Sequence record: MZ475892.1
Reading direction: 5' to 3' (one strand)
Length of the DNA: 64,000 nt
Shown here: positions 40,113 to 56,569 of the stretch, piece by piece
Numbering within the stretch: position 1 is the stretch's first letter
Layout: every line of letters begins with the position of its first letter
The notes under the pieces: model-generated
The model's database searches: none
What the model was told of the DNA's origin: nothing
Seen by the model: only the letters and a program-made list of their open reading frames with translations
Program-made: the position numbers and the translations under genes

Positions 40113-41093
40113 ATGCGTTTTGGTTTCGCCTGTAAACTGCTTGATGACAACGGTAAGCAACCGTACACGAACAAGAGCCTGAGCTATGCTCATTTCTCCA
40201 AGCTGTCTCAGACAGAGCAGCAAGAAAAGCTGGTGCTTGTCGTCACACACAATCTGACCTCGTTACTTGAGATGATCAGACACGTTGGTCGTCTGCGTGC
40301 AGACTTGCGCATGTTTCGAATCACAAGCGAGCTACTTCCGCTGTTCACGCACCCGATGGTCACACGCATGTATCTCCAAACACACATGACCAAACTGACT
40401 GACACGATGTTGGCAACGTGTGGTGCAGCGGCTAGACGTCTTGGTGTTCGACTGTCATTCCACCCTGGTCAGTTTACCGTGCTTGCGTCTGACCGACCCG
40501 ACGTTATGCTTAACTCGATTAATGAAATGGAGTATCACGCCTACTGTGCGCAGGCTATGGGCTACGGTCGTAAGTTCCAAGATTTCAAAATCAACATTCA
40601 TCTGAGTGGTCGTCGTGGTGCCGCAGGTTTCAGAGACGCCTACTCTCGTCTAAGCGATCATTGCCGCAAGATGATCACGGTAGAGAATGACGAGTACACT
40701 TCCTCGATCGAGGATTGTCTTGAGCTTGCCGACATTTGTCCTGTTGTTCTCGACATTCACCATCACTGGGTAATGACTAACGAATACATTCAGCCGACCG
40801 ATGATCGTGTTCAACGTGTCATTGACTCGTGGCGAGGCGTTCGCCCTGTTGCGCATTACTCTGTGTCACGCCCAGAGTTCATACCGTCTACGGGTCTGCC
40901 TGATCAGAACAAGCTAGAAGCAAAGTCTGCCTCGCTGCGTGCTCATTCTGACTACTACCACAACGACAGCGTAAACGAGTGGGCCCTCAGCTTCGAGCAA
41001 TTCGACCTGATGTGCGAGTCTAAAGCGAAGAATCTAGCACGCACGAAACTAGCCCTTTTTAAGGGCAACTCTGCACAAATATGGTCAAAATAA
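40113..41093 (+). CDS. uvsE: UV-damage endonuclease (UvsE/UVDE)
   Basis: RFGFAC, FRITS.LLP, RLSFHPGQFTVLAS, INIH, VENDE, LDIHHH motifs. Confidence 0.92.
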   Translation: MRFGFACKLLDDNGKQPYTNKSLSYAHFSKLSQTEQQEKLVLVVTHNLTSLLEMIRHVGRLRADLRMFRITSELLPLFTHPMVTRMYLQTHMTKLTDTMLATCGAAARRLGVRLSFHPGQFTVLASDRPDVMLNSINEMEYHAYCAQAMGYGRKFQDFKINIHLSGRRGAAGFRDAYSRLSDHCRKMITVENDEYTSSIEDCLELADICPVVLDIHHHWVMTNEYIQPTDDRVQRVIDSWRGVRPVAHYSVSRPEFIPSTGLPDQNKLEAKSASLRAHSDYYHNDSVNEWALSFEQFDLMCESKAKNLARTKLALFKGNSAQIWSK

Positions 41094-53720: not shown

Positions 53721-54017
53721 ATGTCTGAACAAACTCAATTGCCTGGCCAAGTCGTTATCGTTTGTGTTATGCAGGAATCTGATTCTTTCATGGGTCAGAA
53801 GTTTGATGGCTATGTGTACTTGCTTAATCCAGAACACAAAGAGATGTTTGAACGTCACCTGCAGGCGCACAAAAGTCGTGAGAACTATTCACACATTATC
53901 AGCCACGCTAATCACTATATAACTAGCACGGGCTTCGATGCGCTTCATGCTGCTATACGCAAAGATGCAAACAGACCCTGGCTGTGGTCAGATACTGATT
54001 ACACGATAACTGCATAA
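53721..54017 (+). CDS. hypothetical protein
   Basis: 98-aa ORF, GAGGTG SD. Confidence 0.75.
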   Translation: MSEQTQLPGQVVIVCVMQESDSFMGQKFDGYVYLLNPEHKEMFERHLQAHKSRENYSHIISHANHYITSTGFDALHAAIRKDANRPWLWSDTDYTITA

Positions 54018-54020
54018 ATC

Positions 54021-54064
54021 TGGACAAAATAGAGGTAGCTAGAAAAAGCTGCCCCTGATATACT
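54021..54064 (+). promoter_or_regulatory. early promoter (WGG..AAAT class)
   Basis: AAATCTGGACAAAAT; 32 nt to TATACT; TGA extended -10. Confidence 0.8.
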
Positions 54065-54098
54065 AAAAGCGTAGCTTGTGCTGCGCTTTTTTACTTTC
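54065..54098 (+). terminator. intrinsic terminator directly after the promoter -10
   Basis: AAAAGCGTAGC/GCTGCGCTTTT + TTACTTT. Confidence 0.65.
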
Positions 54099-54117
54099 TG
54101 TCTGAGGAGACAACAAA

Positions 54118-54576: not shown

Positions 54577-54759
54577 GTGAAGACCACCAACGACCTGATT
54601 AAAGAATTAAAGCAACATCGTGTTATCATCATTGAAGAACACGACAAGCATATTCTGCCTGACCTGACATTCGCCCTGAGTTGCTTATGCATCGATCATA
54701 CTAAGCGTGTGGTCGAAACAAAGCGTAGTGCTCAGGCAACCAAAATCAAACTCGCATGA
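54577..54759 (+). CDS. hypothetical protein
   Basis: 60-aa ORF, GTG start. Confidence 0.55.
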   Translation: MKTTNDLIKELKQHRVIIIEEHDKHILPDLTFALSCLCIDHTKRVVETKRSAQATKIKLA

Positions 54760-54766
54760 GGTTACT

Positions 54767-55204
54767 ATGAAATTTGATCAAGCACCAACGAAAGCACAAC
54801 TCGTGCTGCTGGCCCTCGCTCTCGAATCCGTTCTCCTCTCTATGGAGAAAACGTTTATCAACCGTAATCTGCTGGAGCAGTTACTTGCGAAGTACGGCAT
54901 CTCGTTTAACGATCTGAAAGAGTTGCGAGAGTACGGCGAAAAGCATTCCGCCATCGGTACCAGCGTTGCTCAAGTTATGGAGATAGCTGCCTTGCATGTG
55001 GCTCATCTGAAAACAGAACCTGTGCCTGAATACAGTCAAGACGACCTTGATCTAATTCGCGTAGAATACGAGCCAATCGATACGTCTGTCCTACGCCAGG
55101 GCGCTGTGAATGATGGGGTTATCACAGTGCAGCAAGCAGCCACTTTTGAGCGCGATCAGATACTGACTGCTATTCTTGAGTACCGACTGCGCTCAGAAGC
55201 ATAA
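54767..55204 (+). CDS. hypothetical protein
   Basis: 145-aa ORF, GAGG SD. Confidence 0.75.
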   Translation: MKFDQAPTKAQLVLLALALESVLLSMEKTFINRNLLEQLLAKYGISFNDLKELREYGEKHSAIGTSVAQVMEIAALHVAHLKTEPVPEYSQDDLDLIRVEYEPIDTSVLRQGAVNDGVITVQQAATFERDQILTAILEYRLRSEA

Positions 55205-55207
55205 ATC

Positions 55208-55251
55208 TGGACAAAATCGTGGTTGTAGCAAAAACCGTCCTATGTTATAAT
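55208..55251 (+). promoter_or_regulatory. early promoter (WGG..AAAT class)
   Basis: AAATCTGGACAAAAT; 32 nt to TATAAT; TGT extended -10; TTGTAG at -35. Confidence 0.8.
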
Positions 55252-55287
55252 AGAGATGTAGCGTAGACGTGAGGTATGCGCTATAAA

Positions 55288-55378
55288 TTGAATGACGCGT
55301 TTTTGCTTGACTGTAAGGTAGCGGTATCTTACAGTCCTTTTTCAAGTGGCTTCGAAGTTTGAGGCTTCTTGCGAAAGG
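55288..55378 (+). ncRNA. two-hairpin structured RNA element, copy A
   Basis: stem1 GACTGTAAG/CTTACAGTC (55309-55336) abutting stem2 (55337-55378); homologous to copy B. Confidence 0.6.
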
Positions 55379-55460
55379 TCAAATGTACCTTTGAGCGTTT
55401 TCGGATTTACGCGGTTTTCACCGACTGCGCTCTCACTTTAAACCGCAAAGGAAATACATC

Positions 55461-56282
55461 ATGCCAGAAGCACGCAAACCTCGCCCAGCTGATCGTTTCG
55501 CTAAAGCCCGTGCAGAGAAAAACTCACCGGAGCGTCAAGATGCGGCAGCCCAGCGCACGTATAAAGACACTCCGCCTAAATCTGTTCAGGTGAAACTTGA
55601 TGCTGTGGCAGCTTCTAAGAAGAAAGTTTCTCGCGGCCCCAAGGCCTCTCGTCCACGTCAGTCGCCTGCTGTTGACGCAGCACCAAAGCCTCGCATTCGT
55701 GATGAGGAACGTGTGTACAATCTCGTACACATGATTCTCTCTGCGTGGAAAGCCGATGCAGAAAACGCGGCAGCAAGTGTGGGAATCATTAAAGTGTCTC
55801 GTCGTAAGATTGAGGGTGCGTTACGCGATCTCAAGAATACGCGCTTCACTAAAATCCCAGGCTTAATCAATGACGTGCTTGTCTACAATGAACTGGTAGC
55901 TGAGTTCGGACAGTGGGTGTACGTCGAGCACGACAGTCCTGATTGGATTTTTGTGCGCCTGCCTGAAAACAGCACGCCTGTGATTCGCGCTGACATTAGC
56001 TATGCCAAGACGGGTGAAACTTCCACGTCTGTTTCGACTTCTAGTGAAGTTCTGCTGAAAGATCTTAGCGAAGACGAAGAAGATGAGATCCCCGAGAATG
56101 TCGAGTACGACGATGCGGACGAGACTGACGAAGACGAAGAGGAGCCGTATGACTACAGCGCTTGGTCTCTGCGTGACCTGCAGGAGTATGCGAAGCGCTA
56201 TGACTTCTTGCAGCCCGACACTGAGGGGTTCGATGATCGCGAGAAGTTGATAGCAGCCATCGAGCTGGGGGAACAGCACTAA
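55461..56282 (+). CDS. protein with basic N-terminus, acidic linker and C-terminal HeH-like module
   Basis: 273-aa ORF; YSAWSLRDLQEYAKRY...DREKLIAAI. Confidence 0.8.
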   Translation: MPEARKPRPADRFAKARAEKNSPERQDAAAQRTYKDTPPKSVQVKLDAVAASKKKVSRGPKASRPRQSPAVDAAPKPRIRDEERVYNLVHMILSAWKADAENAAASVGIIKVSRRKIEGALRDLKNTRFTKIPGLINDVLVYNELVAEFGQWVYVEHDSPDWIFVRLPENSTPVIRADISYAKTGETSTSVSTSSEVLLKDLSEDEEDEIPENVEYDDADETDEDEEEPYDYSAWSLRDLQEYAKRYDFLQPDTEGFDDREKLIAAIELGEQH

Positions 56283-56291
56283 GCACAAATA

Positions 56292-56336
56292 TGGACAAAA
56301 TAGTGGTAGCATCTAAAGCATGACCTGTGCTACACT
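56292..56336 (+). promoter_or_regulatory. early promoter (WGG..AAAT class) with no ORF before the next promoter
   Basis: AAATATGGACAAAAT; 33 nt to TACACT; TGC extended -10. Confidence 0.75.
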
Positions 56337-56341
56337 ATAGA

Positions 56342-56460
56342 TCGAATGCCTTGTAGTTTTTTGACTGTGAGTTACTTTCCGGCTCACAGTCCTTTTTAAA
56401 GTGCTCTCCCAAGAACGCTTTAAAAAGCACAGACTGCCTGCGCTTTTGATAGACAGCATA
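56342..56460 (+). ncRNA. two-hairpin structured RNA, copy B (stand-alone sRNA candidate)
   Basis: stem1 GACTGTGAG/CTCACAGTC (56363-56391) abutting stem2 CTTTTTAAAGTG/CGCTTTAAAAAG (56392-56427). Confidence 0.65.
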
Positions 56461-56464
56461 AATC

Positions 56465-56508
56465 TGGACAAAATCATGGTTGTATCAGAATGCTGCCTGT
56501 CATACACT
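56465..56508 (+). promoter_or_regulatory. early promoter (WGG..AAAT class)
   Basis: AAATCTGGACAAAAT; 32 nt to TACACT; TTGTAT at -35. Confidence 0.75.
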
Positions 56509-56569
56509 TTAATGAGTCGAGCAATAGTGCTCGCAACAAACTAAATCCCAATACTGAGGAGTATTACAC

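Follow-up and report, generated by a model that had tools for sequence, protein, structure and literature searches.

The window analysed here, the whole 64-kb stretch of DNA, comes from the Erwinia jumbo phage pEa_SNUABM_34 (100% identity to MZ475892) and contains a gene for a 273-aa protein that is flanked by two intergenic gaps, the second of which leads to a gene for a 530-aa protein (Table 1). Each gap carries one copy of a two-hairpin module, referred to as copy A and copy B, and both copies are real and lie where a sequence-only reading of this DNA had placed them. The 273-aa protein has 57 homologues, all of which are unnamed, and belongs to no Pfam or PHROG family. Its AlphaFold2 model has a mean pLDDT of 70.8, and a Foldseek search of the PDB returned no match with an E value below 0.3, the weak top matches being winged-helix domains.

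Table 1. Features of the two intergenic gaps and of the genes beside them, numbered from the first letter of the window.
Feature	Position	Strand	Sequence, energy or other evidence
P_A early promoter cassette	55203..55251	+	TGGACAAAAT 55208-55217; TG + TATAAT 55243-55251
P0 hairpin at the inferred transcript 5' end	55258..55284	+	minimum-energy fold
Lead-in common to copies A and B	55288..55308	+	repeat family D3
P2 = stem 1, copy A	55309..55336	+	GACTGTAAG/CTTACAGTC; -15.0 kcal/mol, z -6.0; terminator-like score
C + TTTTT tract, copy A	55337..55342	+	directly 3' of P2; doubles as 5' base of P3
P3 = stem 2, copy A	55337..55377	+	-19.1 kcal/mol, z -3.4
P4, 6-bp hairpin with 7-nt loop	55374..55392	+	100% paired; 2 pairs with double changes
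P5 long hairpin, abuts P4	55393..55432	+	5 of 13 pairs change on both sides
Possible pseudoknot	55411..55446	+	P5 loop GCGGTTT (55411-55417) with AAACCGC (55440-55446), just 5' of the Shine-Dalgarno
Shine-Dalgarno AGGA (55449-55452) and start codon (55461-55463)	55449..55463	+	sequence; 25-leader alignment
273-aa gene	55461..56282	+	basic N-terminus, conserved core, acidic stretch, variable C-terminus
P_B early promoter cassette	56287..56336	+	TGGACAAAAT 56292-56301; TACACT 56331-56336
Stem 1, copy B (P2-type)	56363..56391	+	GACTGTGAG/CTCACAGTC; -14.9 kcal/mol, z -5.1; terminator-like; model match
C + TTTTT (T-run 56393-56397) and stem 2 (P3-type), copy B	56392..56427	+	-13.0 kcal/mol, z -5.4
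P_C early promoter cassette of the 530-aa gene (start 56570)	56460..56508	+	TGGACAAAAT 56465-56474; TACACT 56503-56508

Both copies are preceded by a repeated sigma70-like cassette, which bears out the earlier statement that each starts with an early promoter. The cassette holds an exact 10-mer, found at 55208, 56292, 54021 and 56465 with a -10-like hexamer 28-29 nt downstream, and seven cassettes on the + strand between 41082 and 56465 have this 10-mer or a one-mismatch variant of it at the same distance of 28-29 nt. The cassette motif gives 12 matches where 4.8 are expected, and the repeats correspond to families D1 and D2. Judged from the position of these elements, transcription would begin near 55258 from P_A and near 56343 from P_B. 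P_C is kept in every relative examined, and the cassette at 54021 is the only one arranged with a terminator over its inferred start site (54021-54090).

The gapless 27-nt lead-in that the two copies had been said to share is present, with 19 of the 27 positions identical by our own count; with a repeat tool the similarity reaches over 40 nt (73% identity, 55281-55320 vs 56335-56374), and a second block is detected at 90% identity (55328-55348 vs 56383-56403). Stem 1 of copy A has 9 conserved pairs, and 12 pairs with a 4-nt loop in pEa_SNUABM_34, and between copies A and B it differs by a single A-T to G-C double change, as the claim of a compensatory change had it. The stem-1 hairpin pattern is matched twice in the window against 0.00 times expected from 100 shuffles. 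For stem 2 the earlier count of 12 + 3 pairs holds in copy B, where 12 pairs are topped by 3 upper pairs, and in copy A about 16 of 18 positions pair, G-U pairs included and with two mismatches. In each copy stem 1 is a stable G+C-containing hairpin with a T-run within 0-2 nt, being directly followed by C + TTTTT, and is flagged by an intrinsic-terminator scan. The sequence-only reading had not remarked on this terminator-like tract. Hairpin and T-run are present together in all 25 distinct leaders that were aligned, with the C + TTTTT nearly invariant, and the stem-1 energies (-13.5 to -19.1 kcal/mol) match that of the canonical terminator at 54065-54090 (-15.6).

As an independent test, a covariance model of stem 1 and stem 2 was built from 22 relatives, from which the window and its close relative S13 were left out. 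On the + strand of the 64-kb window the model recovered only copy A (51.8 bits, E 2e-10) and copy B (48.8 bits, E 1e-9); the next match scores 10.3 bits and there are no further copies. A CCTTTTT..AAG motif at 41054, considered as another copy, forms a different small hairpin. The module had also been called apparently unnamed, and in keeping with this neither copy, nor the leaders of three relatives, matches any Rfam 15 family at E values up to 10.

Copy A forms the front portion of a leader of about 200 nt that would extend from 55258, the predicted start, up to the start codon (55461) and that ends at the Shine-Dalgarno, much as had been described. At the predicted transcript 5' end, relatives have a hairpin of different sequence in the same place as P0, with double changes in 3 of 4 counted pairs. 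Downstream of the module, the 5' strand of P4 overlaps the 3' base of P3 such that P3 and P4 compete. The P4 loop is TTCGATA, as in a tRNA T-loop, in 23 of the 25 leaders and CAAATGT in the window, while the loop-closing pair varies between G-C, U-A, G-U and A-U. This replacement belongs to the lineage of the window, six of the seven other phages of the group being identical to the window and pEa_SNUABM_13 not. The P5 loop may form a pseudoknot beside the Shine-Dalgarno, where the seven complementary positions are invariant in the 25 leaders save for a single change that keeps a G-U pair; these columns, like those of the anti-Shine-Dalgarno pairings, are too constant to covary. Whole leaders fold with z-scores of -3.8 to -4.8. 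The fold in which P4 is enforced is the minimum-energy fold in 8 of 12 leaders tested, whereas enforcing a pairing that sequesters the Shine-Dalgarno costs 2.9-6.8 kcal/mol above the minimum in 10 of the 12. Other arrangements were tried and rejected. Stem 2 lengthened by two pairs into stem 1 is broken in the L022 group, a pairing between lead-in and Shine-Dalgarno is predicted in many leaders and is absent in the 2910A-type and SRR290-type, so is not general, and small ORFs in the leader are ruled out by loop indels of 1-4 nt that break any frame. An exact 13-mer of the leader recurs where the upstream ORF ends.

In 44 phage records found by blastn the leader is present a single time per genome, ahead of the same downstream gene, and these searches with the leader gave no matches outside the clade formed by Alexandravirus, Yoloswagvirus and Rivsvirus. 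Contigs from IMG/VR, Logan, ENA and NCBI carry it too, in every case ahead of a homologue of the 273-aa gene, and it is more conserved than much of the surrounding coding DNA. A gapped pattern of the 3' domain matched one genome contig and two metagenome contigs, all of the same phage clade; the genome contig is a MAG and probably phage DNA. Across the 25 distinct leaders 93.6% of cells pair, compared with 32-54% when the partners are slid, and double-sided changes are seen in 22 pairs where shuffles give 9.9, a number of 22 being reached in 0 of 500 shuffles. Covarying pairs make up 9 of 9 in stem 1, 6 of 13 in stem 2, 2 of 6 in P4 and 5 of 13 in P5. With P4 in place 13 pairs of stem 2 are counted, of which four vary on one side only, many such cells being G-U. 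In pEa_SNUABM_5, Yoloswag and other contigs the sequence of stem 1 is wholly different, and the same C and T-run always follows it. The claim that structure is conserved over sequence is thus upheld by strong covariation on the + strand, and since many of the pairs are G-U, which the opposite strand would have as A-C mismatches, it is the + strand RNA that is under constraint.

What kind of RNA, then, stands at the head of this gene? The reading that we somewhat favour is that of a terminator or attenuator-type module inside a cis-acting leader, a module that has been duplicated and shuffled among repeated early-promoter cassettes. The leader would be a highly folded 5' RNA of a conserved early gene in the Alexandravirus/Yoloswagvirus/Rivsvirus clade of Erwinia and Dickeya jumbo phages, and the module itself is made up of a stable hairpin whose sequence is free, C + UUUUU, and a second hairpin that uses the U-run as its 5' strand. 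Stem 1 and the U-run may act as an intrinsic terminator or attenuator, insulating adjacent early transcription units and limiting read-through from the strong host-type early promoters. In copy A transcripts that read through, the remainder of the leader would control how accessible the ribosome-binding site is, by means of stem 2, the T-arm-like hairpin that competes with the stem-2 base, the long hairpin and possibly the pseudoknot. Four segments could pair in alternative ways in the style of a classical attenuator: the first is UCCUUUUU, after stem 1, the second AAAAAGG(G/U), a putative mimic of the ribosome-binding site, and the third and fourth (C/A)CCUUUG and the real CAAAGGA. The likeness of copies A and B would be explained because modules and promoter cassettes duplicate and recombine within these genomes. 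As the literature searched held no transcript-level study of the Alexandravirus/Yoloswagvirus group, we infer start sites, termination and the leader itself from the DNA.

The arrangement can be compared with the PeSL (promoter-early stem-loop) cassettes known from T4-type phages (PMC2839356, PMC4122927). As in those, the cassettes are repeated and intergenic, lie among small genes of unknown function and join a stable stem-loop of the terminator or attenuator kind to a strong sigma70-like early promoter with an A/T-rich part upstream; close relatives differ in their copies in a manner that may reflect recombination, and at 54021-54090 the terminator overlaps the inferred start site. However, the PeSL stem-loop sits between the -35 and -10 boxes or over the -10 box (PMC2839356, PMC4122927), whereas stem 1 of copy A begins about 52 nt, and that of copy B about 20 nt, past the inferred start. 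The phage copies moreover have a second hairpin, copy A runs on into a long conserved leader, and there is no sequence similarity. The module resembles intrinsic terminators in its free-sequence hairpin and U-run, and trp-type attenuators in its overlapping alternative helices (stem-2 base against P4, P4 3' strand against Shine-Dalgarno). It differs from the latter in that no antiterminator competing with stem 1 was found and the leader has no leader peptide, and in that the switch proposed here would act on translation and not on termination.

Some observations run against this reading. The transcript of each promoter reaches stem 1 early (at about +52 in A and +20 in B), and an efficient terminator at that point would abort the promoter's own transcripts, which is wasteful unless read-through is regulated. 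The T-run has five T's only, and copy B is missing altogether from the Alexandraviruses. Simple termination leaves unexplained why stem 2 accompanies stem 1 even at gene ends, and the reading does not explain the T-loop-like hairpin loop.

Copy B, the shorter paralogue of the first module of the leader, occupies the next intergenic gap and consists of stem 1, T-run and stem 2, with no P4, P5 or pseudoknot after them. The most serious alternative, which we nevertheless regard as unlikely, starts from this copy: P_B would drive one or more discrete trans-acting RNAs serving as regulator, decoy or antitoxin mimic, of about 55 nt if they end at the T-run and longer in other genera, and copy A could yield a similar RNA through early termination. 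P_B is indeed a full promoter cassette, there is no conserved ORF between P_B and P_C in three genera, and a terminator-like hairpin follows the inferred start, so that copy B combines a promoter, such a hairpin and the lack of an ORF, with a predicted product of about 55 nt. A promoter-headed, hairpin-rich and ORF-less interval is also kept in the group of the window, in Yoloswag and in pEa_SNUABM_5, the latter two having a similar order of hairpin, T-run and hairpin between two promoters. ORFs of 43-44 aa at the B locus of Yoloswag and pEa_SNUABM_5 were rejected as genes, for they continue across the promoter that follows and are missing from the window. Against a dedicated RNA gene, B-locus sequences align poorly between genera except for the hairpin bases and T-run, the Alexandraviruses lack copy B, and no candidate target or partner was identified. 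The module is found, too, directly after stop codons with no promoter in front of it. In Yoloswag it follows a stop codon and precedes a promoter (L018 1094-1182, 50.4 bits), and in L028 (517-590) it again follows a stop codon with no promoter before it, an arrangement more in line with transcript punctuation than with a dedicated RNA gene. The stand-alone small RNA of about 115 nt that had been proposed at B is supported neither by these promoter-less modules nor by its 3' end, since no terminator-like signal lies near 56458, the sole such signal being stem 1 with its T-run some 55 nt from the inferred start; copy B is not proven to be a stand-alone small RNA. Genera differ in whether they have copy B and in whether further ORFs stand between the cassettes. 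The idea that the copy B tail is left over from the 3' strand of P5, or from the end of the upstream ORF, was rejected, as the local alignments score no higher than shuffles, of which 69 and 125 of 500, respectively, reach the score.

A bolder combination, on which we would place little weight, is that the leader represents a new class of phage riboregulator and the B locus a genuine promoter-driven non-coding RNA, across three jumbo-phage genera. The leader would then be a four-segment translational switch. Its 'on' helix would be the T-loop hairpin, which a small ligand, or a host or phage factor that binds tRNA, would stabilise, and its ribosome-binding site would be locked in the 'off' state by the pseudoknot.

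It is less probable still that the module is chiefly a site of RNA processing, in which RNase III would cut the A/U-rich stem 2, possibly stacked on stem 1, or in which the T-arm-like hairpin would direct a tRNA-processing enzyme. Upstream and downstream mRNAs would be separated and protective hairpins left at the new ends, an outcome that is compatible with the terminator and leader reading. The early mRNA of T7 has RNase III processing hairpins in intergenic positions, and the phage module is likewise intergenic, has an internal irregularity, conserved within a stem 2 of 15-18 pairs, and belongs to early genes of a phage transcribed by the host polymerase. Stem 2 is, however, shorter than the T7 hairpins and falls short of two helical turns. 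As to the second variant, the 23 leaders with TTCGATA, together with one G-to-A change that keeps a purine at the tRNA purine position, speak for recognition as a T-arm, but the loop-closing pair varies, unlike that of tRNA, and an acceptor-like closing stem is not conserved, its pairing failing in pEa_SNUABM_5, Yoloswag and the L022 group, so that a minimal RNase P substrate is not evident.

The put element of HK022 is a double hairpin of about 65 nt that lets polymerase read through terminators (PMC8632103), and compared by description (PMC8632103) the phage module is a double hairpin of similar size, downstream of early promoters and in two copies per genome. On this analogy the nascent hairpins, which abut over some 70-80 nt, would bind the transcribing host RNA polymerase so that terminators further along no longer stop it. 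We hold this to be improbable. Stem 1 with its T-run, for which put offers no parallel, looks like a terminator itself, and promoter-less copies occur at gene ends, upstream of promoters. The function of HK022 put depends on specific features, but stem 1 has no conserved sequence, and blastn matches of the leader are confined to its own clade.

That the region is a tRNA gene or a decayed one scarcely deserves credence. ARAGORN calls a 95-nt tRNA-Glu(ttc) in the copy A region of pEa_SNUABM_13, the GenBank record of which annotates the same, and P4 with its 5-6-bp stem and 7-nt loop does resemble a T-arm, which accounts for the tRNA-Glu annotation in that one record. Yet ARAGORN finds no tRNA in the window or in six other relatives, and the Rfam tRNA model has no match up to E = 10. 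In the window's lineage the loop has been replaced, and there is no conserved cloverleaf. A 7-bp acceptor closing stem can pair in some genomes but fails in the same leaders as above, its 3' strand covarying instead with P5 (pair 184/223), and covariation backs the 9-bp stem 1 and a 13-17-bp stem 2 and not a 4-bp D arm and a 5-bp anticodon arm. Equally hard to credit is an element that works as DNA only, be it an operator palindrome, an internal sigma70 promoter or a recombination site: the stem 2 arms are nearly palindromic, the model also scores on the - strand (27 bits), such repeats could act as recombination points and TTGACT-N17-TACAGT lies within copy A, but relatives do not keep these promoter-like hexamers, G-U is frequent among the conserved pairs and would be A-C on the opposite strand, and pairing is kept while the stem sequences vary freely.

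The RNA element at this locus is previously undescribed, yet of an ordinary type of phage gene-control RNA. To our knowledge, conserved regulatory RNAs supported by covariation have rarely been described in jumbo phages, and the leader gives transcript mapping and structure probing a defined target. Two database annotations look spurious, the tRNA-Glu of one record and the protein-coding gene that another record places over the leader. Should the module be a terminator that is shuffled together with promoter cassettes, the idea of PeSL mobile cassettes would extend beyond the T4-type phages.

The two double hairpins claimed by the sequence-only reading of pEa_SNUABM_34, with a compensatory change in stem 1, are present as copies A and B; the stem-1 pattern gives 2 matches in the window against 0.00 expected, and a single A-T to G-C double change separates the copies. 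The shared lead-in is recovered as a direct repeat of 40 nt at 73% identity, a further repeat of 21 nt (90%) covering the 3' strand of stem 1 and the start of stem 2, which folds at -19.1 kcal/mol in A and -13.0 kcal/mol in B. Directly 3' of both stem-1 hairpins stands C followed by TTTTT, a feature that reading had passed over, and both hairpins score as intrinsic-terminator-like. The promoter proposed ahead of each copy corresponds to a repeated cassette (predicted, with inferred start sites), in which the 10-mer TGGACAAAAT is followed after 28-29 nt in every case by a -10-like hexamer, with TG just 5' of the hexamer in most. The position of the 10-mer relative to the putative promoter would suit an UP-like element, the promoter being of the host sigma70 type.

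Features of the window and of related phages, with the helices of the leader
Feature	Position	Description
Stem 1, copy A	55309-55336
Stem 1, copy B	56363-56391
10-mer, exact	54021, 55208, 56292, 56465
10-mer, one mismatch	41082, 44511, 49979
Cassette at 54021	54012-54100	terminator hairpin at 54065-54090, then TTTTTT
Upstream ORF	54707-55204
Shared 13-mer	55182-55194 = 55420-55432
Shared 20-mer	55142-55161, 55387-55406
273-aa gene	55461-56282
Hairpin just after P_C	56518-56533	CGAGC...GCTCG
Shine-Dalgarno hairpin	56550-56565	AATACT GAGG AGTATT, 6 bp
P0		hairpin at inferred 5' end of leader
P2		stem 1; T-run comes next
P3		stem 2
P4		6-bp hairpin, 7-nt loop; 5' strand overlaps 3' base of P3
P5		long hairpin adjoining P4
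Candidate pseudoknot		P5 loop with seven bases just 5' of Shine-Dalgarno sequence
Annotated tRNA-Glu(ttc), pEa_SNUABM_13 (L001)	L001 3155-3249 (MZ475891.1 241695-241789) = window 55304-55398	95 nt
gp311 (YOLOSWAG_310), Yoloswag (L018)	L018 1458-1655	65-aa CDS
B-locus stem-1-type hairpins, pEa_SNUABM_5 (L030) and Yoloswag	L030 1503-1560, L018 2833-2860

As proposed, copy A heads a larger leader, and relatives are organised in the same way ahead of the homologous gene. The region matches Erwinia phage pEa_SNUABM_34 (MZ475892, 264 kb) at 100% identity, and seven other phages are 97-100% identical over it; in about 19 more records (Alexandravirus and relatives) the match is confined to the middle of the downstream gene, at 76-79%. 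Every gene of the region is short, lies on the + strand and lacks a named function. The leader was located by blastn with the Alexandra leader in 44 records, at one place each (42 from Erwinia phages and 2 from Dickeya phages, Yoloswag and pEa_SNUABM_5 among them). Further copies came from one genome scan and one metagenome scan, from IMG/VR contigs and from contigs that code for a homologue of the 273-aa protein, one of them a 266-kb contig from a Salmonella assembly. The alignments covered 18 and, once extended, 25 distinct leaders. The 14-kb contig JAVWLC010000023.1, labelled Raoultibacter sp. MAG, holds the whole leader of this phage clade together with its promoter cassette, although it was binned into an actinobacterial MAG, and is probably a mis-binned phage contig. 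No Rfam family was found for any part of either copy or the leader, in keeping with the supposition that the element is unnamed. The 273-aa gene looks modular in the alignment of its homologues (A3), which have in common an N-terminal motif and a core of about 100 aa, and which also have a variable basic linker and, after an acidic stretch, at least two unrelated C-terminal modules or none. In the structural model the core is predicted with confidence and weakly resembles a winged helix; no structural match was significant.

A covariance model of P2 and P3, built from 22 relatives with the window and pEa_SNUABM_13 left out, matches copy A at 51.8 bits and copy B at 48.8 bits, with no other hit on the + strand of the window. 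P4, P5 and the pseudoknot are absent from copy B, and Alexandraviruses have no copy B, its place being occupied by a plain hairpin and the promoter of P_C, the early cassette before a 530-aa gene. At the B locus of Yoloswag and pEa_SNUABM_5 there follow in order a promoter-like cassette, a P3-like hairpin, a P2-like hairpin, a T-run, another P3-like hairpin and P_C; the P2-like hairpin keeps the outer bases of the window (GACTG...CAGTC), and its interior covaries. A conserved stretch (ATGTCCGATGA..TACGCG), which the window lacks, is common to the loops of the stem-1-type hairpins in these two phages. The suggestion that copy B is a stand-alone short RNA agrees with the lack of a conserved ORF at the B locus of the window, Yoloswag and pEa_SNUABM_5, but the module is also found without a promoter. 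In Yoloswag one lies right after the gp310 stop, before a promoter and with none preceding it (50.4 bits), a second being inside the leader (36.9 bits), and in another relative's contig (L028) one lies right after another gene's stop (27.7 bits). Placement at promoterless sites argues that the double hairpin is, as judged from sequence, a reusable intergenic unit and not a single-purpose gene. An RNA processing site and a put-like antiterminator (PMC8632103) are rival accounts of the module. No terminator-like signal other than the B hairpin with its T-run lies between the 273-aa gene and the one that follows it.

Copy A could also be taken for a tRNA gene, as GenBank annotates it in pEa_SNUABM_13, where ARAGORN reproduces the tRNA-Glu call because P4 resembles a T-arm: there, and in 23 of the 25 leaders overall, a G/C-closed stem carries the loop TTCGATA. 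ARAGORN finds no tRNA in the window or six other relatives, and the candidate acceptor stem is not conserved, its 3' strand covarying with P5, so the annotation is very likely a false positive. P4 is treated instead as a T-loop-like hairpin with a putative partner, and pEa_SNUABM_13 retains the T-loop form. The window itself has CAAATGT as the loop, closed by a compensating T-A pair, and six other phages of its group do not differ from it at P4; one shows a single mismatch somewhere in the 173 nt compared.

Conservation of structure over sequence, as originally suggested, is borne out by the 25 leaders, in which 93.6% of cells are paired, against 32-54% when partners are slid by 1-3 columns. 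Pairs changed on both sides number 22 of 48 against 9.9 in shuffles (0/500 reach 22), and the covariation score is 0.220 against 0.122, shuffle controls that overstate significance because the leader sequences are related; counts on the 18-sequence alignment agree. The slid-partner control is stronger evidence than the shuffles, as is stem 1, which has a wholly different sequence in pEa_SNUABM_5, Yoloswag and two other relatives' contigs (L029, L032), always adjoined by the same C/T-run. All 9 pairs of P2 covary, P4 has G-C, A-U, U-A and G-U variants at two positions, and P5 has five covarying pairs, its first pair changing from G-C to A-U in pEa_SNUABM_13. The pseudoknot columns are invariant apart from one change that keeps G-U, and the pairing is offered as a conjecture. 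A DNA-only element is disfavoured by the many G-U pairs among the helices, which point to the + strand RNA, rather than duplex DNA, as the molecule under constraint.

Yoloswag gp311 is annotated across the conserved leader, overlapping the next gene's start; here the pattern of covariation, with indels in the loops, indicates a structured RNA and not a coding sequence. The leader, in its P4/P5 part, shares with the upstream ORF, at the 3' end of the latter, one exact 13-mer (ACCGACTGCGCTC) and one 20-mer at 75% identity; the score is above all 500 shuffles and points to an ancient duplication of the leader unit. Upstream of the 530-aa gene, a hairpin with the Shine-Dalgarno sequence in its loop is invariant in the window, Yoloswag and pEa_SNUABM_5 and unchanged in the Alexandravirus sequences fetched. 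The hairpin just after P_C covaries, becoming GACGC/GCGTC or TTGAGC/GCTCAA in relatives, and it seems that early transcripts of this kind generally have a hairpin at the 5' end.

The nearest described system is PeSL of T4-type phages, a promoter/terminator cassette (PMC2839356; PMC4122927), which likewise comprises repeated early-promoter and stem-loop cassettes travelling with small genes. The present element differs in its second hairpin, its long leader and its hairpin position, the point on which assignment to PeSL failed. The cassette at 54021 does have the PeSL-type arrangement, its terminator hairpin (-15.6 kcal/mol) starting immediately 3' of the -10-like hexamer; transcripts arriving from upstream would be stopped by it, the cassette's own RNA lacking the full 5' arm.

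Classically, an intrinsic terminator is recognised by a hairpin of free sequence ahead of an invariant T-run. Because P2 and its T-run have this signature, and stem 1 matches in energy the canonical terminator of the cassette at 54021, they are read as a terminator or attenuator. Alternative pairings would join UCCUUUUU to AAAAAGG(G/U) at the P3 base, AAAGG(G/U) to (C/A)CCUUU in P4, and CCUUUG to the real CAAAGG. On folding, the P4-enforced fold is the minimum-energy fold in 8 of 12 leaders, and enforcing the sequestering pairing costs 2.9-6.8 kcal/mol above the minimum in 10 of 12; for the window, the minimum coincides with the sequestering fold. Four alternatively pairing segments would give an attenuator-like logic on the ribosome-binding site, and we infer that such a switch may operate at copy A, where read-through RNA would carry P3-P5. 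P2 with its T-run would punctuate the early transcription units of these phages.
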